Part shown: one piece after another, positions 7,280 to 52,154 of the stretch
How positions within the stretch are numbered: the stretch's first letter is position 1
Layout of the letters: each line of letters opens with the position of its first letter
Notes under the pieces: model-generated
Seen by the model: only the letters and a program-made list of their open reading frames with translations
Told to the model about the DNA's origin: nothing
Databases searched by the model: none
Program-made: the position numbers and the translations under genes
From: Octopus sinensis
Lineage: Eukaryota
Length of the DNA stretch: 64,000 bases
Reading direction: 5' to 3'
Assembly: GCF_006345805.1 (NCBI RefSeq)
Contig: NC_043010.1
Span: 43,152,001-43,216,000 of the forward strand

Positions 7280-10200
7280 TCTTATTTGATTCTCTTTAAA
7301 TCTCTATATGATTTGAAAAAGTCAAAATAACTTACATGATTTTCATAAATTAAATTTCAATATTACACTGCTGAAAAATTAATTAAGATTAAAATAAGTA
7401 TATGCAATTGGAATTCTATTACTTGTGTGTGTGTGTGTATACATACAGATGTTACTCACTGTTACTCAAGAAAGATGTCTCTGCCTTGTGTGGACATGTG
7501 CTATGAATGGGCAATGAAGGTTGGGTTAAAAATAGCCTGAGATTTCTGGTTTTATGATACAAAACCTTTCATCTTAAATTAAAATCTGTCAAATTCATGA
7601 AAGAAGCTTTTTATTAAGTTATGTTTCAAACAGCAGTTTAATGATAAACATTTGAAATATGGTCACATAATGGTTGAATATTAAAGATTAGTTAAAGTAT
7701 TGAAGGCCTTAATAAAAATAAAATTACCTTTTTAAAGAAAAAGTTCTGTAAATATTGAATAAATACTGTTTAATACAGTAACAGTAGTCTAATGACAAAA
7801 AATAATTTAGGATGTAGTTTTCCTGTTCATGAAGATTTATAATCTACATTGCACAACACTAATTGTAAAAATAGCTATATATTAAGTCAGTGTAGTTCCC
7901 ACTGAAATCCAAGTTATACAATAACCACAGACCAGTAATTGTAGCAGGATGAAAACTTAATTGGCTTAATTCTGTGCTTTCTAATGCATACATTCCAATC
8001 TCTTGAAGTGTAATCTAAGTACCCTATATCAGTTCTTCTGTTATATGCCCTCATTTAAGGATATTTTTTACTAGCAGAATACATCATCCATTTGTGTTAC
8101 TTGTAAACTCCAATCATTGTGGTTGAGCTCATATTGATTTAACAATATATTTGCTCTTATTTAGTTACTACTTGAAACTGCCCTACAACATTCAACAAAG
8201 AAATTCACTTCATAGCTTTGGTCCTAATGCATAATACTTTCAACAAATATCTTTTTCCATAGCCTTAGCTCAGCCTTATGAGTGATATCAAGCTGAGGCC
8301 TGTCAGACTGATGGTACCTTTGTCCTGATGAACTCCACCATCATCACCTGGCCTTTGAGCACCTTTAGCAAACCCCAGTCAGTTGCAAGCATTTGAACCA
8401 GATCTCTGATCTCAAAATATCTTCTTTCTAGCTTCCAGTGTTGGAGGCCTTTAAATATATGATGGTTGCTGCTCTTCCACTTCTAAGTCATAATAAAAAA
8501 AAATAAGCAACTTTTCAGGTGAAGAAAAATTTCCTTTTATCATTGACTAATAGAATCCCCCAAACTTCTTCCACATTCTCTGTGACTTACAAAGTAACAG
8601 TAGCTTTGTTTCAATCTGTAATATATTTACCTTATTATTTACATAACCTCCTTACTTTGGTTGATAACATGGTACTAATACATGTAGTACACTTAATGTG
8701 TTGTTTGTACTTGGGAAACTTCTTCAACATTTCTAAAGCTATTCGTTGCATTCCATTCCATATATAAGCTAAGTTAGATGTTACTCCTTGGTTTTGAGCA
8801 TAGAAATTCTCATACGACATGGTTGGGTTTTGAATGTTCATACTGCCAACTAAAACGTTAGTTTAGGCTTATCAAGGATGACCATCAGTTTTATTTTATT
8901 AAAAAATTTTTTTTTCATACTTTCACAACATACTTTCACATACTTTAACATGTGAGGCTGATTGAAAAGAAATTATGTTACTTGTGTGAAATGTATGTCA
9001 TAGTCGAAACTTCAGTAGTTGCATATTTGTGCAGATCTGCTCCTCTTTTGTTTTATGTTGGGACTACCAACTGGTCTCATTAGTCCTGAACAGCAAGAAT
9101 ACATTAACAGATATAGATTTTTTTTTCTTATTTCCTTCTTGGATTTATTTGCCTAAAATAAACACTCAGACTAGTATTAGAAAGATAGTCTGTTTGCCAT
9201 TTTAGATTTACTCTAAAATAAACCTAAATAAGCCCAAACATGTAAATTTTGGTGTATGTGTGTGTATGGGCATTGGTCATAACATTGACTAATCTAGAAT
9301 CATTTTAAAAGAATTAAAGTAAAAGATACAGTATTAATTCTTTTCTTCTTTTTTTTAATAATGATGCTAGCATTTTACTTGTGAAAAGCAAAGTTAATTG
9401 AAATAACACTTCATATGTTACTGATAATTTTTGTCATAACAAAAAGGATAAAAAGTAAAGCTGACTTTAGTTAGATTTTAACTCCGAACTGTACAACACT
9501 AGGAAAAAGTTAACAATTATCTGTAAAGTGTAATGTTAATAAACATCAGTAAAACATGTTAGTTGAATGTATTGGTTGAAATGAGAAATAGTTTTTATAT
9601 ATTAAAACAAAATTCTTCTTGGTAAAAGTATCACTTAACATTGTTCATTAGATTGTCTATGGGTCACATACTCTCACCTGTGCTGTGTTGTATCTGGCAA
9701 AGACACTAGGTAGACCAAATATTGTAATATTGAAGAGCAGCTTATATTATAGGGTAAATGATGAGATTGTACTGCAGCTCAAATAGTGATATTGGAGGGC
9801 ATCTACAATGTAATACTGATGTTTGGACAAAAGTGTAATATTATATGCCATGACAACATGTAATATCAGAGCAGCTATATTATTATATTGTAGGACAAGA
9901 AAAATATTATATGACATGACATGCCAAATTGTGATATTATGAGCCAAAATGTGATATACAGCAAGACAAAATATAATACTAGAGTGGAATCAAAATGATA
10001 TTTTTGAGATATAATGTATTAGATTGTAGAGCACATTAAATTTTGTAGAACAGTAAAAAGCTGGATATTGTTGAGCAGGCATAGTTTGAAACAGTAAAAT
10101 TGACATTTTGCTTTCTCTATTGCTGTAACTGATGAAACTGAGTTTGCTTTTTATATTTATATGAGTTAATGAAAATTAGTGTCGGAAATACAGGAGATAA

Positions 10201-10387
10201 ATTTCACCATATAATATGTTATATGAGTTTATGTTTGTATGCATAGGCTGTAGTTCTACCAGTGTCACATGTAACACCTTTAAACTATAAAACATTTGTC
10301 ACAAAACAAATATTTCTTCTTGCAAAGGTTCATGAATTGGTACTTGCTTGAGGAAGTATTGTGTGTGTGTGTGTATATATATATACT

Positions 10388-10437
<50 letters not shown>

Positions 10438-10689
10438 AATAAAAAAACAGGAAAAAACAAAAGTCAATTAGACGTACACAGTGAATATATTAAATTGACG
10501 TTCAGTAAACATTTTAGTTTGAAAAATAGGAGTGGAAATGATGTTTTGAGCATGCCTCTTCATCTGAAAGAGGAAAAAGTTCTGAGAGGAAGAAAAGGAG
10601 GAAGAAATAGTCCAGAGAAAAGCACATATATTATTACACATGCGTCATTACATGGTTGAAAAATAACTGACCAGAAGTTGGACGAGATA

Positions 10690-12060
10690 GAGAATGTGGT
10701 TGTAGAAAGGCAGAAGGGTGCAAAAATGGCCACTGTGTGTGAGTATGTGTGTGTGTGTGTGTGAATGCATGTGTTACTGTGTATACATGTGTTTGTGTGT
10801 GTGCATATGAGTGTGTGTGTACAGGTATGTGTATGTATATATGTTTGTGTGCCAGTGTGGGCAAGGAGTACATGCTATGATATGCAAACGTGTGTGTGTG
10901 TGTGGGGGGATCTGAGTTATGTATGTGGGTGTGTGGAAGGTGTGGAAGATAAATGGAATGAGAAAAAAGGAGGAGACATCAGAGGAAAGGAGAATGAGAG
11001 GGAAAAGAGAGTTGGAAGCAGTTACAAGAAGGAATGGGTTGTGTTAAGCCCAAACAGTGTATGAGTTTGTTGTGTGAAAGTCTGGTGGAAGTGGTTCCAT
11101 GGTGTAAGGCCAGGCTGAAGTCAGTGAGGTGTTTGGTGGAGTGGTTGGCTGAGCAGAATTGACAGGTGATGGGGGGGGGGATTTTGGAGGCAGATATCTC
11201 ATAAATGTTCTGCAAATCTGTCAGCTTGATGGTGGCCAGACTGTCCAACATATAATGGGCTGCAAAGGGTACATTTGAGGCAATAAATGATGTTGGAAGA
11301 GATACAAGAGAAAGAGTCAAGGATATGAATAGTGTGTTGGCTAGTCCCAGTGAGGGAGGTGCTGTTGGTGTGGCACTGGGGTCTGGAGCAAGGGAAAGAT
11401 CCAGGGAGAAGGGAAGGGCTACAGACCAGTTGCTAGCATAGGTTTCAGGCTCATTTGAAGGAGGGAAGGTGGGTTAGGGAAAACAGAAGGTTGCAGGATT
11501 GGATAAAGGTTGAAAGGCCTGTAAGATTTTCTAATGAAGGGGTAGGGTAGAAGGGTCGAAAAAGAGGGGAAAGGAGATGCAGGTGAGAGACAGGTGTGAG
11601 GAAAGAGAGAGGGCTGAAGTGCAGTCAACTTAGTATGCACAGGTAAGGGCAACATGGACAAGATTGGAGGGTATTCACAATGAGTGAATAAACGGGCCAA
11701 ATATTGAGACTGAGTCTCAAAATCTCAGTCACAGCTGCACAGACATCAGGGATGGAGGAATTAGGAGTAGTGGATATACCATTTAGTTTGGGAGGGGTGG
11801 AAGGAGAAAAAATTGAGGTGGAGTTGGGAATTAGTAGTTTGAAAATGCTGAAAGTGGTAGAGAATGATTGAGGGCATCATTAGAGAGAGAGAGAGAGTTG
11901 AGTTGTCCAGGAAGTTGAAAGAGATGACAGAGGTGAGCTCAAGGGATGGATGAAAGGTAGAAACAGAAGAGGTGAAATTACTGAGTCATTTACTGCAGTT
12001 GTCTATGTACTGACTATAGTTCTAGGTAGGTCAGTGGCTTGAGAGAAGATTTAGGCCTTG
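10690..12060 (-). mobile_element. Penelope-like retroelement fragment (RT C-terminus plus GIY-YIG endonuclease), decayed
   Basis: Minus strand reads QYIDNC (YIDD motif, about 12000), FPNPP linker, and CISSNIIYCLKCTLCSPLYVGQSG..DRFAEHL (GIY-YIG, 11241-11294), then FCSANHS..LALHHG..LIHCLG. Confidence 0.85.
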
Positions 12061-12119
12061 ACATAATCAACAAATAAGTGGGCAAAGTTGGAGCTCATTC
12101 TCACTCTCACAGTGACTCC

Positions 12120-12121
12120 AG

Positions 12122-12156
<35 letters not shown>

Positions 12157-12990
12157 TACATACATATATATACACCACCTAACTCAGTACCCTCACCACA
12201 CACACCACCATACAAACACCCATACACTGTTCCACTCTGTACTCACATCACACCATTATGCACACACCCACACACACCTTCCCACTCCACACACACTAGC
12301 ACCCAACACCTCCCAGTACCCACACCACACACCATTATGCACACACCTTCCCATTCCATAAACACCCAATACCTGCCAACCCTAACTCCTGTCACCCCCT
12401 ATCCCACCTCTCAACCCCTAACTCTTGGTATCTGTATCCTACCTCACACCTCTATGCATTCCCCCACAACACATTATTTTCTCCAAAAAAGCACACAATG
12501 CACATGTACACGGATAATATACACACACACACACACATGCTTAAAACACATACAACTTTCACACACATACATACACACGTGCACACACACATACTTACAC
12601 ACGTGCACACACCACCCGAACAAGTACATATCAACTGCTACACACACGCATTTGCACACACACACAAATGCACGAAATGCACATCACTCAGTGCACGCTC
12701 TAATTTACTTGTACACATACACATGCTCCCATATACCCGCACAGCCTATGATTTTGCACATGCACACACTCACACACACACACACACACACATGTCCATA
12801 TGCACTAACACATACACGCCAGTTCATGAAGCACACATCACTCCACAAAATGTATGCATTAGGTCAATTATACACATACACACAGGACCACATAATTTTA
12901 AGCTCACCCACATATACATTCACATGTGCTCGCCCCTGTTCACACATACACACTCACACACACCATTTCTCACATATGCACATGCACTTG
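12120..12990. repeat. CA/TA-rich low-complexity tract
   Basis: Degenerate (CA)n; source of the HT-rich ORFs. Confidence 0.85.
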
Positions 12991-13199
12991 GACATCCTAG
13001 TTTGACCAGGTCACCTTTATTATCTCCCTTTCACTCAGCCTCTTTCTTCTGGCCTTTTCATTGTGTTGAACCATTAATCCCTACCTATTTTTCTTCTCTT
13101 TGTTTTTTTCATTCTCTCTCCATTTTTTTTTACCTCTCAATCCTTTCTGTCAAAGAGTGTAGGCTCAAAATGTCAAAATCTTTTCCATTCTTCCCAAGC

Positions 13200-14297
13200 A
13201 TTACACTTTAAGTGACTGACACTTTTTTATACAGCTGTCTTCATCCATGCCCATCAGACAACAAAACCAGCACAGTCTTCTCTCTTGCACAATACATGAT
13301 TCCTCTTATGCTTGATTTTTCTCTTAATACCTTGGTGCTGTACATGCACACTGACATTGCACACCCAACAGAATATACTAGCTTCATTCCTTTCTAGTCT
13401 TTGTATATGCTCTGCATTCAGTACCCATGTTTCACTACCATGTAGCATTGCTATTTGTATATAAGCATCATAGTCTGCCTTTCAATCAGAGAGAGAAAAC
13501 TTTTGTCATCAGCAGATGTAGTAGTCCTCTGAACTTTCCCCATCCAATTCTTATTCTAGCAACTATACTTTCAGAACATCCTTTTCCACTACTTACAGAA
13601 AGTTCCTACTACCTGTAGGACACCTCCAGAGCATTCAAGAAAAATCTATTTCTTGTGTGTAATTAGTTTTTATTGTTTTTGTGCGTCTCCTACATACAAA
13701 GGCTACTTTCTCTGTTAGCCTTCTTGTGAATCCACTCTACCTCTTGTGTGCCCATAACTTGCACTGAATACATTGTATGGAATTCTTACCTCCACCTTTC
13801 CCTATATATCAAGCTGGGCCATTTATCAAATGGGATTAGAGTCTGTCTACTTTTCTGCTAACTAGAACTTTAAACTTTAAGGCCCTGTATTCTTTTCTAA
13901 TTCTACTATAAATTCTGTTATCAGAACAAGGTCATCAGCATATAATAGTTCCCAAGGGCAGTCAGTCTTAAATTCCTCTGTTTTGGCCTGGAGGACTATG
14001 ATGAACAAAGCCCTGGTGAACTCCTATGTGTACTCTAAATTCATCACTGTACATGGCTAACTCTTACTTTACTGACAGTTCTGTACATGGCTTGTATGGT
14101 GATCATAAGCTATTTGTCTATCCCTGACTACCTCAAAGGCTACCAGATCACAGAACATGGGACTATGTCGAAGGTTATCTCCTGTTTGACAAATACTAAG
14201 TATAATGGCTTACTTTTAGCTACCTGCAGTTGTCTTATTAGGAAGATGGCATCAGTAGTACTTCTCTCTGACACAAAACCAAACTGCAGTAGATATT
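13200..14297 (-). mobile_element. RTE LINE RT fragment, decayed
   Basis: Minus strand: QFGFVSERSTTDAIFLIRQLQ...CPWELLYADDLVL...MLHGSETWVLNAEHIQRLERNE. Confidence 0.9.
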
Positions 14298-16597: not shown

Positions 16598-18199
16598 ATG
16601 TATACTATACCATCTATGTATTCAGTTGGTAAACAATATATTTTTGATATTACTGGGAAAGCTTTCACACAAGAAGATTTGGTGAGATCTGAGGATTATT
16701 TTGACAACAATAGTGAAAAACAGTTCAGCTATACAAGCCAGCCAACATTTCCTACACAACCCAATATGAATCCTCTTGAACAGCCCACTTCAACAGCAAG
16801 TTCGACAAGTGAAAACTATGTACCTTATCGAAAACCTTTTCCTCAACAAACTGTTTCTTCTCAAGGTACTGGTGAAACGTCAAGAAATTCAGAAGCTACA
16901 GAAGCTGAAACTGAAAACACAAACTATTCTGGTGATTGTTGCAGTGAACAACAAAGAGCTCGTAACTGCTCAACCAGTTGCTACAGCACTCCAAAAGCCC
17001 ACAAGTGTGCTCACTGTTCAAAGACTTTCGCTCGGAGAACTTATTTAAAAAGTCATGAGCGAGTCCATTCTGGTGAGAAACCTTTCAATTGTATGTATTG
17101 TCGTAAAGCCTTTTCGCAGCGAACAAACGTTCGTAGTCATGAGCGAACACACACAGGTGAAAAACCTTATATGTGTTTAATTTGCCGTCGATCTTTTTGT
17201 CAGCAGAATGAGCTGCGGTCACACGAGCGTGTACATACAGGTGTTAGACCATATCAGTGTCATTTTTGTCCCAAAGCTTTCACTCAGCTTACCAATCTGC
17301 GGAATCATATAAGAATACACACAGGCGAAAAACCATTTGTATGTATTGTGTGCGCTCGCTCATTTACTCAACATAACGAACTTCGAAGTCACGAACGAGT
17401 TCATACTGGAGAAAAACCATTTAGTTGTTCCATGTGTTCTAAAGCTTTTTCACAAAGAACTAATTTACGAAATCACGAAAGAGTTCACTCTGGAGAAAAA
17501 CCATTCCAGTGTATTTACTGTTCGAAATCCTTCTCCCAGAGAGGTACGTTAAAAAATCACGAACATACTCATACAACAGATAAAAATCAAGTAAAAACGT
17601 CTCAGAAATCTGCATCGTTGTCTTCATCTAATTCATTAAGCCATCATTCCAAAAGTCAAAGTCATGAGCAAAAATCTAGACAGCTGGGACAACAAGAACT
17701 TATTCAGCCTGCTTCCTCAGCTGAACCATGCCAAAAAGAACCATCAACTTCAGCATTCCATCATAAACCACAATCATCATCTGTCATTTCAAAATGGGTT
17801 AATTCGACATCATCACATTCAAAGTCTCAAAGCAATTCATCTGTTTCTCGTATATCTCATGCAAACACACACGGACGTGTTTCTCTTGGAGATGACAGCA
17901 GCCGCAAAGAAATACAATCATCCTCATCTATTAGATTTCAGCAGGTACCAACTATTCCACCAGTAATAATGGCACCTTCCTTTTTGCACCAGATGACCCA
18001 GGGCTGGGAAAATACCTACAATTGGCCCCGTGGATTTCCTATGGCTGCTGCTTGGAATACATCAGGGAAAAATATTTCATCTGTATATTCTCATGAAGGA
18101 AAGTTGAAAAAACAAAAGTCCTCTTCTGGAGATATAAATAAAGGCAAGAATATGAACTCTTATGATGTGAGGAAAGAAATTCAATCAAGCTCCAAGTAG
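16598..18199 (+). CDS. ZNF-A: tandem C2H2 zinc-finger protein, 533 aa, 7 fingers (17006-17572), S/T/Q-rich flanks, conserved N- and C-terminal motifs shared with ZNF-B
   Basis: Uninterrupted ORF with canonical CxxC-x12-HxxxH fingers and TGEKP linkers; ATG at 16598 preferred over the GTG at 16571 because it aligns with the ZNF-B start; candidate splice acceptor at 16293-16294. Confidence 0.93.
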   Translation: MYTIPSMYSVGKQYIFDITGKAFTQEDLVRSEDYFDNNSEKQFSYTSQPTFPTQPNMNPLEQPTSTASSTSENYVPYRKPFPQQTVSSQGTGETSRNSEATEAETENTNYSGDCCSEQQRARNCSTSCYSTPKAHKCAHCSKTFARRTYLKSHERVHSGEKPFNCMYCRKAFSQRTNVRSHERTHTGEKPYMCLICRRSFCQQNELRSHERVHTGVRPYQCHFCPKAFTQLTNLRNHIRIHTGEKPFVCIVCARSFTQHNELRSHERVHTGEKPFSCSMCSKAFSQRTNLRNHERVHSGEKPFQCIYCSKSFSQRGTLKNHEHTHTTDKNQVKTSQKSASLSSSNSLSHHSKSQSHEQKSRQLGQQELIQPASSAEPCQKEPSTSAFHHKPQSSSVISKWVNSTSSHSKSQSNSSVSRISHANTHGRVSLGDDSSRKEIQSSSSIRFQQVPTIPPVIMAPSFLHQMTQGWENTYNWPRGFPMAAAWNTSGKNISSVYSHEGKLKKQKSSSGDINKGKNMNSYDVRKEIQSSSK

Positions 18200-27963: not shown

Positions 27964-28059
27964 CGGAGATGTACTCGCATAGCAAGTAATTTGATCTGAG
28001 ATCGTATGCTGCAATTGTTGTATATATATATATATATATGGCATTAGGAAGGGCATCCA

Positions 28060-28310
28060 GTCATCATCATCATCATCATTGTTCGACTGTAGTCGAGACA
28101 ATGGAATTTACCATGCTACGCCAGACTTCACGATCCATCATGGCATTACAGAGGTCCTGTTGCTGGATGCCTGTATCCCTGGAGAACGTGATCAGAGACA
28201 GGACCCGGCAAAGCAGGGGCTGGACCTATATCCGCAGGTATACCATTAGGTCTGGTTCCCTGGGGAAGAGGAACCCTGGTGCAGTTAATTGTAAATTCCA
28301 TAGTCTTTTC
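28060..28310 (-). mobile_element. RTE LINE extreme 3' end with (GAT)n tail
   Basis: Minus strand: SRDTGIQQQDLCNAMMDREVWRSMVNSIVSTTVEQ* followed by tgatgatga. Confidence 0.7.
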
Positions 28311-28569
28311 AAATGGCTAATAATGTGTGCGCGCCACTACTACATAGAAACCATGCCAAAACAGGCAAATGGAAGGTGATCAGTGTTCCAGCTGACCAAA
28401 TCCTGTGAAACTGTCCAACCCATGCTAGCATGGAGAACAGACATTGAAAAGTGATAATGATGATGATGATGAAATATATGTGTGTATGTGTGTGCATGTG
28501 TGTGTGTGTTAATAACACCTAGAAGGAGGTACTTTTTCCACTCATGAAAGTGAATGGAGTTTTAGCCAG

Positions 28570-29028
28570 CAGGAACTGATGTCATCAGATGGTACCCAAT
28601 ATTCACCAGGTGTTTTTGACTCTGAACTGTGACACCCACCTGTTGGTGGGTCAGCACAGGTGGCAGAATCACTATTCTTCATTTCCTCCTGGCTTCCAGC
28701 TTAACTCCTCTCTCTTATTCCAAAGCTAACAAGAGGCTCTTGGAACTTCCTTTTCCGTCCTGCACACAGTCTCCTTTTACTCCTTTCCTCTCATTCCAAT
28801 GGCTGTAAGCATTCCTCCATGCCAACTGAGCAGAAATCCCCTACAGCCAATCTCAACTGAGAAAAGCCATAACTGCCATCCCTTCTCCCTGCAATCTTGC
28901 AGAAGGTTCTCATAATTGGCATGTTTCAATTTGTGGGCCTCATCTCAAGGGACTGTGAGCTCAATGAAGATAATTTTCTTGGTCTTTTCAGACAACAGAA
29001 CCACATCTGGCCTCAGAGTTGTATGGAC
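28570..29028 (-). mobile_element. Hero/NeSL-type non-LTR retrotransposon 3' end (restriction-like endonuclease domain plus 3'UTR), decayed
   Basis: Minus strand: HTTLRPDVVLLSEKTKKIIFIELTVP*DEAHKLKHANYENLLQDCREKGW..VEIGCRGF...RASC*LWNKR, matching the RPD..ELT..K..KY RLE signature. Confidence 0.8.
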
Positions 29029-29538
29029 AGCCTAGGGACCATTAATAGATATAGCAATTTGGATTATGAAATTCCACATAGAATTAGGAAAGCAAGTGTT
29101 GCTTTCGGAAGGCTAGAAAAGCACCTCTGGAGTCGGTGAGACATATGCAGAAAGACAAAGATAAAGGTGTACAAGGCATGTGTGCTTCCTTCTCTTCTCT
29201 ATGCCCGTGAGATATGGGTCACATATCGATACCACCTTAAACAACTGGAACGTTTCCATCAGATGTGCCTCAGATGGATTTATGGCATTAAGTGGAAGGA
29301 CCGCATCAGTGATCTTGAAATATTGGAAGGCTCTCGGTGTGAAAGTATAGAAGCTCTTGTGTTAAAGCAAAGGCTCAGATGGAGTGGTCATCTGGTTAGG
29401 ATGAAGGATTCAAGTATGCCAAAACAACTCTTTTATGGAGAGTTAGCTAAAGGAGAACGACCTCCACATAAACCAAAAAAGAGGTATAAGGACTTGCTGA
29501 AGGCTTCTTTAAGAGTGCTAAGAGTACCATACGAGTGA
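29029..29538 (+). mobile_element. RTE (BovB-like) LINE fragment
   Basis: LGT..EIPHRIRKASVAFGRL..KVYKACVLPSLLY..LRWSGHLVRM..PKQLFYGEL..G.RPPHKPKKRYKD; in-frame stops present. Confidence 0.9.
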
Positions 29539-29539
29539 G

Positions 29540-29946
29540 ATTGTTGCCAGAGCAACAAGCTGGCCTCCGTGATGATGGCATGTTAAAAACACCATTCGAG
29601 CATGATCATTACCTGCATCACCTTACTAGCACTTGTGCTGGTGGCACGTGAAAAAAACATTCGAGCGAGGTTGTTGCCAGTGCCGCTGGACTGGCTCCTG
29701 TGCAGGTGGCACATAAAAAGCACCATTTGAATGTGGCCGTTGCCAGTACTGCCTGACTGGCCCTCGTGCCAGTGGCATGTAAAAGCACCCACTACACTCT
29801 CGGAGTGGTTGGCATTAGGAAGGGCATCCAGCTGTAGAAACTCTGCCAGATCAGATTGGAGCGTGGTGCAGCCATCTGGTTTGCCAGTCCTCAGTCAAAT
29901 CGTCCAACCCATGGTAGCATGGAAAGTGGATGTTAAACGATGGTGA
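29540..29946 (+). mobile_element. Repeat family D with internal tandem subunits
   Basis: gtggttggcattaggaagggcatccagctgtagaaa...ccaacccatggtagcatggaaagtggatgttaaacgatg. Confidence 0.8.
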
Positions 29947-30091
29947 TTTATGCAAGTTTCCATCTACCAAATTCATCCAAAAGTCTTTAGTCAACCTGGG
30001 TGTATCGTAGAAAACACTTGTCCAAAGTGACATACAGTAGTACTGAACCTGAAACCATGTAACTGTAAAATAAATTTCTTAGCCACATGGC
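29947..30091 (-). mobile_element. SINE family A, 5' half
   Basis: Degenerate reverse complement of the family A head. Confidence 0.65.
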
Positions 30092-39713: not shown

Positions 39714-41417
39714 ATGTATCCTGTACAAACCATGTATACAATGGGAAATCAGTTTAACTTTGAAATTTATGGTCCAACATCCCTTTATTCATCTTTAACT
39801 TCAAAAGAAGGCCCATCCAATGGGAAGTGCCAACAGAAGAGTGCTTTAGGTATACCCTGTGGTTCATCAGGGACTTCCTCAGTTACAAATAGCACTAAAA
39901 AACCTTACAAGTGTGACGTTTGTAGAAAGGGATTTTCAAGACAGGTCAATTTGTCCAATCATGAGGCGATACCTGCTGACGATAAGCATTTCTATTGCCA
40001 ATATTGCAAAAAAGCATTTTCGCAACGAGCACATTTACGCACCCATGAATTTACCCACATGGCTGAGAAACCTTTTAGCTGTACTTTTTGCAGTAAAACT
40101 TTTGCTCAGAGGACAAATTTTGATAACCACCGAAGAATTCATACTGGAGAAAGACCTTACCATTGCTCTTTTTGTGAAAAATCCTTTAGTCAACGTACCA
40201 ATTTGGACAACCACGAACGGACTCATACAGGAATTAAACCATATGTTTGTTCAGTGTGTAAAAAATGTTTTTCTCAGATCACAAACTTGAAATATCACGA
40301 ACGGATTCATACAGGGGTAAAACCATACCATTGTGCCTTCTGTGAAAAGTCGTTCACTCAACAAACAGAACTTAAAAACCATGAACGTACACATACAGGC
40401 GAAAAACCTTTTCATTGTACACTTTGTGATAAATCTTTTACCCAGAGAACGAACTTAATTAATCATAGGCGTATACACACTGGGGAAAAACCATTTCAGT
40501 GTGGCTTTTGTGATAAATCTTTTGCTCAGCGCACAAATTTGGATAACCATAAGCGCACACATACAGGAGAAAAACCATTCCATTGTTCCTTCTGTGAAAA
40601 ATCATTTGCTCAACGAACAAATCTGGATAATCACCGAAGAACACACACTGGGGAAAAGCCATTCGATTGCAATTATTGTGGGAAAGGTTTTGCACAGCGT
40701 ACAAACCTTGACAACCACAGACGAATACATACAGGGGAACAACCCTTAAGCTGTAACTATTGTGGGAAAACATTCGCCCAGAAAACAAACTTGGACAACC
40801 ATCATAGAATTCACACAGGAGAAAAACCATTTACTTGCGAAGTGTGTGGAAAATCTTTTTCCCAGCGTGCCATCTTAGATAACCACAGAAAAATTCATAA
40901 AGTCAAATTACTTCAGTCATGTAAGTCATTCGACCAGAGAAATGAGAGTGAAATAGAAGCTGCTAGAATAGAGGTGAACAACAGGACATCAAATGAAGAG
41001 GGTAAATGCAATCAGTCAGGAAGTAACCAACAACAAAATACACCTGGAATGCAGTCACTCAATACAGCTGATATTGCTCGCCGAAAATCAGCGTTTCCTC
41101 AGCGATTAGATGCAAAGAGCTATAACCAACACAACCCTGTAGTATCAAATAACAGTGAATCTTTTTTAAGGGATTCTCAGCTAACACAGTCTATACCAAG
41201 CCATCGTATGCAGTCTTCTTCATTATCAACCAGCTGGATGAATTCTCAGTTTCTACACCAAATGCCACAGACATGGGAAAATAATTATGGCTGGCCCAGA
41301 GGTTTTCCCATGACTTCTTTGTGGAACTCGGGTTGGACAAATACACCAAGTACACTCTCTTGTGCAATGAGACAAAACAAACCAGGAATTGAAATGGAGT
41401 TACACCAGAGAACTTGA
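39714..41417 (+). CDS. ZNF-B: tandem C2H2 zinc-finger protein, 567 aa, 11 canonical fingers (39996-40898) plus one degenerate N-terminal finger, conserved N- and C-terminal motifs shared with ZNF-A
   Basis: Uninterrupted ORF, TGEKP linkers, exact 84-nt finger period; splice acceptor tttttcattcAG at 39673-39674 shortly before the ATG. Confidence 0.95.
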   Translation: MYPVQTMYTMGNQFNFEIYGPTSLYSSLTSKEGPSNGKCQQKSALGIPCGSSGTSSVTNSTKKPYKCDVCRKGFSRQVNLSNHEAIPADDKHFYCQYCKKAFSQRAHLRTHEFTHMAEKPFSCTFCSKTFAQRTNFDNHRRIHTGERPYHCSFCEKSFSQRTNLDNHERTHTGIKPYVCSVCKKCFSQITNLKYHERIHTGVKPYHCAFCEKSFTQQTELKNHERTHTGEKPFHCTLCDKSFTQRTNLINHRRIHTGEKPFQCGFCDKSFAQRTNLDNHKRTHTGEKPFHCSFCEKSFAQRTNLDNHRRTHTGEKPFDCNYCGKGFAQRTNLDNHRRIHTGEQPLSCNYCGKTFAQKTNLDNHHRIHTGEKPFTCEVCGKSFSQRAILDNHRKIHKVKLLQSCKSFDQRNESEIEAARIEVNNRTSNEEGKCNQSGSNQQQNTPGMQSLNTADIARRKSAFPQRLDAKSYNQHNPVVSNNSESFLRDSQLTQSIPSHRMQSSSLSTSWMNSQFLHQMPQTWENNYGWPRGFPMTSLWNSGWTNTPSTLSCAMRQNKPGIEMELHQRT

Positions 41418-41554: not shown

Positions 41555-41569
41555 CACATACATACATAT

Positions 41570-41612
<43 letters not shown>

Positions 41613-41662
41613 ATATATATATATATATTATATATATATATATATATTTGTATATATATATA

Positions 41663-41744
<82 letters not shown>

Positions 41745-43020: not shown

Positions 43021-43058
<38 letters not shown>

Positions 43059-43101
43059 ATTATATGCTCGATAGTATATATACATATATATATATATATA
43101 T

Positions 43102-43140
<39 letters not shown>

Positions 43141-43172
43141 TATATATATATATACATATATATATACATACT

Positions 43173-43206
<34 letters not shown>

Positions 43207-43217
43207 ATATATATATA

Positions 43218-43262
<45 letters not shown>

Positions 43263-43270
43263 ACATATAT
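43020..43270. repeat. (TA)n microsatellite
   Basis: Direct reading. Confidence 0.95.
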
Positions 43271-43535
43271 ATATTGAGAAAAAGGAGGCAGTCAGAATTT
43301 TGGATAAATCTTTATTTGCACTTTTGTTCGTTTATTGAACTCAAGACAAAATCAAAATTCAAAATGATAAAAACAGAACGTTTCCTTGTTCATTTAAATG
43401 AATCAGATGTTTTTGGTTAGAGAAATATTTTGGTTTTTCTGGTAAAAGGGGGTAAGTGAGAAAGGAAAGCAAAGGAGAGAGAGAAAAATAGACACAGAGG
43501 TTTCAGGACAATAGATAGATAGGTAGATAGATAGA

Positions 43536-51434: not shown

Positions 51435-52154
51435 TTATTGCTGCTCACTGTCATAATAAGAATTTTCTTCTGATTGGGAGCCACTGCTGTCGCCGCTGTT
51501 GCTGCATGCATCTAATTGCATTCTTTCAGTTTGATGTGTCTTCTCATGACACTTCAGCAATGCTTTGCGATGGAACACTTTTCGACAAATTCTGCAGAAG
51601 AGGGTAGCACGGTTAGAATGAGTTTTGATGTGGCTCTTTAAATTTCCTTTCTGCGAAAAAGCTTTGTTGCAAATCATACAAATGAATGGCTTTTCGCCGC
51701 TGTGTGTACGTTGATGAATTTTGAGGTTTGTGCGCTGGGAAAAAGATTTTGAACAGACATTGCAAACAAATGGTTTAAATCCAGTATGAATATTTTCATG
51801 GTTCTTCAGATTGGTCCGCTGTGAGAAAGCTTTTTCACAGACTTCACACACAAAAGGTTTCTCACCACTGTGAACGCGTTCATGATTCTTTAGGTTGGTT
51901 CTCTGTGTGAAAGATGCCTGGCAGACATTGCAGTGGAACGGTTTCTCTCCTGTGTGTGTACGTTCATGGGTTTTTAAATTGGTTCGTTGTGAGAAACTTT
52001 TGTCACACTGGGTGCAGTGAAATATCTTATCTGGAACGGCTGGAGACATCTCTGGATGGTTGTTCTTCTTATGGCGTTTCAGCTGAGCATACCTATCAAA
52101 TGTTTTGCCACATATGTCACAAGCATGTGGTGCTTTATCTTCAGGTCTGTACAT
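51435..52154 (-). CDS. ZNF-C: compact C2H2 zinc-finger protein, at least 239 aa, 7 fingers (51534-52121), short acidic Ser-rich tail
   Basis: Intact ORF with TGEKP-linked QRTN fingers; splice acceptors just upstream (exon start 52156 or 52160), so a small upstream coding exon cannot be excluded. Confidence 0.92.
   Translation of the reverse strand: MYRPEDKAPHACDICGKTFDRYAQLKRHKKNNHPEMSPAVPDKIFHCTQCDKSFSQRTNLKTHERTHTGEKPFHCNVCQASFTQRTNLKNHERVHSGEKPFVCEVCEKAFSQRTNLKNHENIHTGFKPFVCNVCSKSFSQRTNLKIHQRTHSGEKPFICMICNKAFSQKGNLKSHIKTHSNRATLFCRICRKVFHRKALLKCHEKTHQTERMQLDACSNSGDSSGSQSEENSYYDSEQQ

Follow-up and report, generated by a model that had tools for sequence, protein, structure and literature searches.

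In the KRAB, SCAN, ZAD, BTB and FiNZ families of zinc finger proteins, the element that accompanies the finger array is a folded N-terminal domain of 40-120 amino acids, and it is carried by tens to hundreds of genes. Cephalopod C2H2 genes are among the largest lineage-specific transcription-factor expansions known. Here we analyze two of them, ZNF-A and ZNF-B, in a stretch of 64,000 nucleotides from Octopus sinensis (the whole stretch is called the window below), with a focus on a Trp-rich segment near their C-termini. An earlier note, made from the letters of the window without database searches, had proposed this segment as a candidate effector module of cephalopod zinc finger proteins. Unlike the KRAB-type domains, the octopus element is a predicted-disordered C-terminal segment paired with a short N-terminal motif, and it occurs in about four genes per genome.

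A Trp-rich module and an N-terminal motif shared by two genes

The segments at 17981-18058 (+) and 41250-41327 (+) translate to FLHQMTQGWENTYNWPRGFPMAAAWN and FLHQMPQTWENNYGWPRGFPMTSLWN, respectively, and are identical at 19 of 26 residues with an invariant WPRGFPM, exactly as the earlier note described them. Both lie near the C-termini of long C2H2 open reading frames (ORFs). When each motif was searched against the window with tblastn, only these two copies were found, each recovering the other at E = 3e-13, and the match between the two tails is far above chance. Family alignments place the segment inside a conserved island of about 65 amino acids, which begins at R[DK][SE].Q...S.R[LFM]Q some 27 residues upstream and ends at W.N.PS..SC. 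Its consensus is R[DK][SE].Q..S.R[LFM]Q...I..SWM.S.[FY]LH.M.Q.WENNY.W.RGFP..P....W.N.PS..SC, and in some paralogs conservation extends to KQ.KQ..W...Q.MH..SK and a terminal Lys. The earlier remark that the flanking tails show no alignment is only partly true: it holds outside this island, and the island itself is about 65 residues long and not 26.

Two Trp (of WEN and of W.R) and the Arg of W.R are invariant across the family, and almost no variation is seen at R.Q, L, M, Q, E, N, N, Y, F/Y, P, W.N and P of the module. Of 14 members, 70-100% retain the residues that separate the Trp (E, N, N, Y, R, G, F/Y, P, L and M), and two members have Ala in place of the module Pro (RPFAM, RSFAM). The tail holds 3-5 Trp, nearly all of them within the module, with 0-1 in the other 300-600 residues. 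A second shared motif, MYPvQpMYpmGNQfnF...HLK, which the earlier note did not list, lies at the extreme N-terminus and co-occurs with the C-terminal module in every full-length family member. ZNF-A and ZNF-B both display MYPxQPMYxxGNQxxF at the true start, an intronless coding sequence, a C2H2 array and a C-terminal R.Q...[FY]LH.M.Q.WENNY.W.RGFP module. The features of the two genes are listed below, where dN/dS is the ratio of nonsynonymous to synonymous substitution rates, pLDDT is the predicted local distance difference test score and TRF is Tandem Repeats Finder.

16598..18199, + strand: ZNF-A, intronless coding sequence, 533 amino acids with 7 C2H2 fingers (ATG-to-stop ORF, exact protein on record, stop upstream)
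16598..16657, + strand: ZNF-A N-terminal family motif MYTIPSMYSVGKQYIFDITG (common to ZNF-B and all full-length members; dN/dS 0.04 against Argonauta)
17000..17575, + strand: ZNF-A finger array, 7 C2H2 (Pfam zf-C2H2 and zf-H2C2_2, translation; dN/dS 0.017)
17903..18094, + strand: ZNF-A extended C-terminal Trp-rich module, holding 17981-18058 (translation, family alignments)
39714..41417, + strand: ZNF-B, intronless coding sequence, 567 amino acids with 12 C2H2 fingers (ORF, exact protein on record, stop upstream)
39714..39773, + strand: ZNF-B N-terminal family motif MYPVQTMYTMGNQFNFEIYG (alignments; AlphaFold2 pLDDT <30)
39906..40898, + strand: ZNF-B finger array, 12 C2H2 (Pfam, translation, TRF; AlphaFold2 pLDDT 70-88)
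41169..41363, + strand: ZNF-B extended C-terminal Trp-rich module, holding 41250-41327 (translation, family alignments; contains every one of the 5 Trp in ZNF-B)

The exact proteins are on record for Octopus sinensis GCA_006345805.1 (CM016872.1, at ~43.17 and ~43.19 Mb). An in-frame stop lies 66 nt (ZNF-A) and 36 nt (ZNF-B) 5' of the ATG. The genomic copies of the family are single unbroken ORFs with an in-frame stop 6-66 nt 5' of the ATG, as are those in Logan contigs, and these upstream stops therefore confirm the true N-terminus. Outside the shared motifs, ZNF-A and ZNF-B are 35-44% identical, with nearly all of the identity in the fingers. In ZNF-B, TRF reports periods of 84 and 168 bp at 40140-40744, in the later fingers with their near-identical FAQRTNLDNHRRTHTGEKPF units, which suggests recent internal finger duplication.

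Constraint on the module was estimated by the Nei-Gojobori method between O. sinensis ZNF-A and its ortholog in Argonauta hians (78% identical, overall dN/dS 0.13), for which dS is ~0.9 (0.88 in the motif). The ratio is 0.017 in the fingers, 0.27 in the N-side linker, 0.26 in the part of the tail that precedes the module, 0.15 in the 26-residue motif and 0.12 in the 46 amino acids after it. ZNF-A is coding throughout its tail. Constraint on the motif exceeds that on the stretch before it, and constraint on the N-terminal motif is stronger still (0.04 versus 0.15). The expectation that the motif would evolve more slowly than its flanks was thus borne out on the upstream side only. A clearer contrast than that in the ZNF-A ortholog pair is seen between octopus and cuttlefish, where the 807-residue protein of O. 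bimaculoides and a cuttlefish-type ortholog are 83% identical in the module, 84% in the fingers and 39% in the rest of the tail. Between ZNF-A and ZNF-B, the motif is identical at 18, 22 and 14 of 26 first, second and third codon positions, 7 of the 14 degenerate codons encoding the same residue differ synonymously, and codon usage varies across the family. Since synonymous sites are free to vary, selection acts on the peptide, and the codon comparisons show a module that is, by this measure, translated and under purifying selection on its amino-acid sequence.

Known domains and predicted structure were examined for both ends of the proteins. At E<=1, Pfam assigns C2H2-type families only to the two proteins, without PF01352, PF02023, PF07776 or PF00651, in keeping with the earlier view that neither protein carries KRAB, SCAN, ZAD or BTB. 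The module alone, taken from 10 members, matched 0 Pfam families at E<=10, and the C-terminal module profile found no match in a PDB sequence search. The N-terminal motif profile recovered only ordinary C2H2 fingers from PDB, at a non-significant E of 0.6-2.5. AlphaFold2 returned a mean pLDDT of 56 and no secondary structure for the module by itself. In full-length ZNF-B, the fingers reach pLDDT 70-88, residues 1-61 and 405-567 fall below 50, and the module scores 25-35, again with no secondary structure. The module is predicted to be disordered and to have no fold of its own. Together with the octopus-cuttlefish identity contrast, these models support the earlier view of the segment as an island of conservation, here seen at the protein level, inside otherwise fast-evolving, predicted-disordered tails. 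A regular-expression scan of seven full-length members for short interaction motifs found no WRPW/Y, eh1, PxDLS, [YF]PWM, PPxY, LxxLL, FKPY or SNAG, and the pattern of the PY-type nuclear localization signal (PY-NLS) matched only HTGEKPY finger linkers, none of them in the module.

Distribution and history of the family

A profile hidden Markov model of the two window copies was searched with HMMER, without a word prefilter, against 1.84 billion representative proteins. The representatives are clustered at 50% identity, and carriers can hide behind representatives that lack the motif, so the count is a lower bound. Thirteen proteins were found at E<=1e-3, of which nine are genuine (E 8e-19 to 9e-4); P0002, P0005, P0010 and P0011 are repetitive translations and were excluded as carriers. 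All nine are C2H2 proteins or their tails, and every match with a species name is from a coleoid: Argonauta hians, Acanthosepion pharaonis, Octopus vulgaris, O. sinensis or O. bimaculoides. They comprise the ZNF-A ortholog of Argonauta hians (P0001, 'ZNF271-like'); a 687-residue 'zinc finger protein 2 homolog' of Octopus vulgaris and O. sinensis (P0007), whose cluster includes the 688-residue P0014 of O. bimaculoides; three full or partial proteins of Acanthosepion (Sepia) pharaonis (P0003, P0006, P0009); and four from Logan assemblies (P0004, P0008, P0012, P0013), the cluster of P0013 including P0020 of Acanthosepion pharaonis. Two of the five runs behind P0004 are Sepia esculenta RNA-seq (PMC11917092, PMC10442824).

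A search with full-length ZNF-B was dominated by generic vertebrate zinc finger proteins, and all 139 proteins retrieved were then scanned with the module profile (hmmsearch). This yielded two further members, P0056 (O. bimaculoides 'ZFP2', 807 amino acids) and P0086 (Logan, 780 amino acids). The module is absent from about 115 other top-scoring zinc finger proteins, among them Argonauta P0074, Argopecten P0048 and Solemya P0066, and also from Logan P0055, an ortholog of Argonauta P0074. A word-indexed homolog search gave 0 matches for the tail alone and, with a 10-sequence profile, only two short tail ORFs; such an index evidently misses short motifs within long proteins. The profile searches nevertheless extend the motif well beyond the gene pair in which it was noticed. 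Its restriction to coleoids is not proven, because a two-sequence profile weakens at distance and clustering at 50% hides carriers.

Octopus has at least four paralogs of the family on one chromosome, against a whole C2H2 complement that was counted as 1,453 genes in O. bimaculoides (PMC12513265). The third C2H2 gene of the window (51435-52154, -) carries neither family motif. Its ORF encodes 239 amino acids with 6-7 fingers and may be one exon of a larger gene. From the number of carriers and this third gene, it follows that the motifs mark a small, old subfamily and not the expansion. P0007 maps to the O. sinensis chromosome that holds the window (CM016872.1, at 63.65 Mb; L011), and P0014 and P0056 lie on one O. 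bimaculoides chromosome (L014: CM046614.1, 3.39 Mb). The other two octopus members are also intronless, and the genes are tens of Mb apart and do not form a tandem cluster.

From end to end, the 807-residue octopus protein shares 67% identity with a 791-residue Logan protein, which has nearly the same tail as S. pharaonis P0009, and the 687-residue octopus protein is 51% identical to P0013, which clusters with S. pharaonis P0020. By these alignments the two octopus-decapod pairs look orthologous, and the family's paralogs therefore arose before the octopod/decapod divergence. Public names of family genes include 'ZFP2 homolog', 'ZNF271-like' and 'KRAB'. The 'KRAB' label on P0003 and P0009 (Acanthosepion pharaonis) looks like an annotation artefact, because ZNF-A and ZNF-B have no KRAB match in Pfam.

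A candidate docking module and its alternatives

Our preferred reading, which we hold with moderate confidence, is that the Trp module is a disordered partner-docking segment of a small coleoid poly-C2H2 family. The ~65 residues in the C-terminal tail would form a docking site anchored by Trp and other aromatics, which may become ordered upon binding a conserved protein partner. In the consensus, the [FY]-x3-M-x3-W-x3-Y spacing would line the aromatics up along a single face of a potential helix, with the invariant W-x-R-G-[FY]-P as a turn after it. By analogy with short motifs such as WRPW, eh1 or SNAG in other zinc finger or bHLH factors, the partner could be a transcriptional co-regulator, whose recruitment would add a function other than DNA binding to the finger array, and the N-terminal motif may act together with the module in this function. 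A more far-reaching proposal, for now a tentative and somewhat doubtful one, is that the N-terminal motif and the Trp module constitute an undescribed cephalopod-specific cofactor-recruitment system, in which a corepressor, a coactivator or a small-RNA/deadenylase partner is bound only via these peptides, kept in the oldest, coleoid-wide and reportedly most expressed C2H2 layer. The motif itself is real, conserved at the protein level and apparently undescribed. Keywords for a non-finger motif, or for an accessory or effector element of cephalopod C2H2 genes, returned no mention in a 2025 survey of cephalopod C2H2 expansions (PMC12513265) and a 2023 study of metazoan zinc finger proteins and transposable elements (PMC10547256). 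The earlier note had named three results that would overturn its proposal (a match to a described domain, confinement to this gene pair with dN/dS no lower than in the flanks, or removal of the region by splicing in all transcripts), and none was obtained outright.

Several observations weigh against a docking module. The dN/dS of the motif (0.15) is not below that of the 46 residues downstream (0.12), a comparison made on 26 codons with small counts. ZNF-A and ZNF-B of O. sinensis are known here from genomic sequence and not from transcripts. The AlphaFold2 alignments are shallow (9-10 sequences), so that a small fold or an N-to-C contact could be missed, and we infer the docking role solely from conservation and predicted disorder. 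Finally, in two cuttlefish-type contigs the ORF holding the module is in another frame than the finger array, and the genes in question may have fingers and module unlinked. In the ZNF-B-like gene of Sepia esculenta, the finger ORF and a 146-codon module ORF overlap in different frames near an A8 run (in L003 at ~2140-2216, with the A8 at ~2166-2173), and the break is identical in five independent runs (L003-L007), at least two of them RNA-seq. The module of this gene is also the most divergent, with WDSPF for WENNY and I for M. A similar frame break occurs in another Logan contig (L008, ~1472-1510). The break could be a real frameshift with recent tail loss, slippage at the A run or a shared artefact.

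The conserved segment could also be explained at other levels than a docking peptide. Adenosine-to-inosine (A-to-I) editing is pervasive in coleoids, and conservation could in principle reside in the RNA, for example in a double-stranded structure for editing, and not in the peptide. The ZNF-B motif does contain an inverted repeat of 10 nt without mismatches (CATGGGAAAA, 41272-41281; TTTTCCCATG, 41303-41312), which links the W-E and F-P codons in a predicted hairpin with z = -3.0. This hairpin is specific to ZNF-B, as eight other members including ZNF-A fold differently (z -1.7 to +0.8); the genetic code itself makes WE codons partly antisense to FP codons; and the free synonymous sites in the motif run contrary to an RNA-level constraint. 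With a hairpin that relatives do not share and synonymous sites that are free, we rejected an RNA-structure explanation, whose probability we put close to nil. The earlier suggestion that the motif serves the coleoid C2H2 expansion as a general effector, in the way that KRAB does elsewhere, is in accord with its attachment to C2H2 arrays, its restriction to cephalopods as far as seen and its lack of a known domain. It is nonetheless largely refuted, and very improbable, with only nine clusters at 50% identity among 1.84 billion proteins (a lower bound), about four Octopus genes against the 1,453 of O. bimaculoides (PMC12513265), and no motif in the third window gene, Argonauta P0074 or Logan P0055.

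Other explanations accept a function for the peptide and differ in what it would bind. The earlier note had loosely likened the spaced Trp to GW182-type W-motifs, an array of which could enter the Trp pockets of Argonaute/PIWI or of CCR4-NOT (NOT9/CAF40, NOT1). The family has 3-5 Trp in an S/N/Q/P-rich region that AlphaFold2 predicts to be disordered, with a spacing of 6-20 residues and flanks that are mostly S, T, G, N or P. However, in known W-motif arrays (GW182, TNRC6, Tas3) only the Trp and their small flanking residues matter, whereas in the octopus family E-N-N-Y, R-G-[FY]-P and [FY]LH.M are conserved as much as the Trp, as would be expected of one specific interface, and the carriers are poly-C2H2 factors without RNA-silencing features. 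Given that conservation of the intervening residues equals that of the Trp, we disfavor this link, which is weak and quite improbable. The two motifs might instead bind each other or themselves, as an oligomerization element or condensate 'sticker' in a SCAN/ZAD/BTB-like role. Accessory domains of zinc finger families are mostly oligomerization modules, which counts for self-association, as do the strict co-occurrence of the two motifs in full-length members and their aromatic-rich composition inside Q/N/S/P-rich disordered regions. Against it, no N-to-C contact is predicted by AlphaFold2 in full-length ZNF-B, where both motif ends have pLDDT <35 on a shallow alignment, and a fixed residue order and identity fit a defined interface better than they fit a sticker-type composition; we consider self-association unlikely, if worth keeping in mind. 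A disordered, conserved linear segment could also be a signal for trafficking or turnover, for instance a degron or a nuclear import signal of non-classical type, and RGFPM (R-x2-P-hydrophobic) loosely resembles the R/K/H-x2-5-P-Y end of a PY-NLS. The module region is not basic, its only PY-NLS-like matches in the family are the finger linkers noted above, its Pro is Ala in the RPFAM and RSFAM members, and finger arrays usually supply nuclear import themselves, so a signal of this kind has a low probability.

The remainder of the window offers context for the two genes. Scans of the window for Rfam families, tRNAs and tandem repeats gave nothing of relevance, and Ebp2 and Aldolase_II, the neighbours of the Argonauta ZNF-A locus, were not seen within its 64 kb. 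Between ZNF-A and ZNF-B, a GC-richer block spans 28000-30000 (0.43-0.50 versus ~0.33). An ORF of 123 amino acids at 29167-29538 (+) presumably resembles the C-terminal part of ORF2 of a long interspersed nuclear element (LINE), and Pfam reported nothing significant for it. Microsatellites are present as (TATC)n at 838-1074 and as (AT)n at 41558-41743, ~140 nt past the ZNF-B stop, and at 43021-43274. Within 10001-14000 the GC skew flips from +0.49 to -0.45, and the long ORFs at 12.1-13.2 kb are T/H/Y/I-rich low complexity.

Comparison with known systems

The signature formed by the two motifs does not explain the cephalopod expansion. It defines a compact and tractable subfamily of four intronless Octopus genes, at least two of which have cuttlefish orthologs, and the two conserved peptides are a direct handle on what a cephalopod zinc finger protein recruits. 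The module profile also allows clean annotation of genes now called 'ZFP2 homolog', 'ZNF271-like' or, wrongly, 'KRAB'. The family is like the KRAB, SCAN, ZAD, BTB and FiNZ families in having a taxon-restricted non-finger element on poly-C2H2 arrays and genes on one chromosome, and the 'KRAB' names on Sepia pharaonis homologs are automatic labels.

Similar in form are the corepressor motifs WRPW/VWRPY and eh1 (Groucho/TLE), SNAG (LSD1/CoREST) and PxDLS (CtBP), which are likewise short conserved aromatic peptides in a disordered terminus. None of their patterns is present in the family, and the octopus module is far longer, at ~65 amino acids. SNAG must occupy a free N-terminus, as the octopus N-terminal motif does, but SNAG is basic and the octopus motif is aromatic and neutral. 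The module shares with the W-motifs of GW182/TNRC6 the presence, in a disordered tail, of several Trp beside small or polar residues; in those W-motifs the sequence between the Trp is free, whereas the inter-Trp residues of the module are strongly conserved and its context is that of DNA-binding zinc finger proteins. Glutamine-rich activation domains of the Sp1 type place bulky aromatic and hydrophobic residues in Q/N/S-rich, non-acidic sequence beside C2H2 fingers, as is the case here. Those domains are long, poorly conserved in exact sequence and without similarity to the module, in contrast to the octopus family, where the order of residues is fixed across the octopod-decapod divergence.

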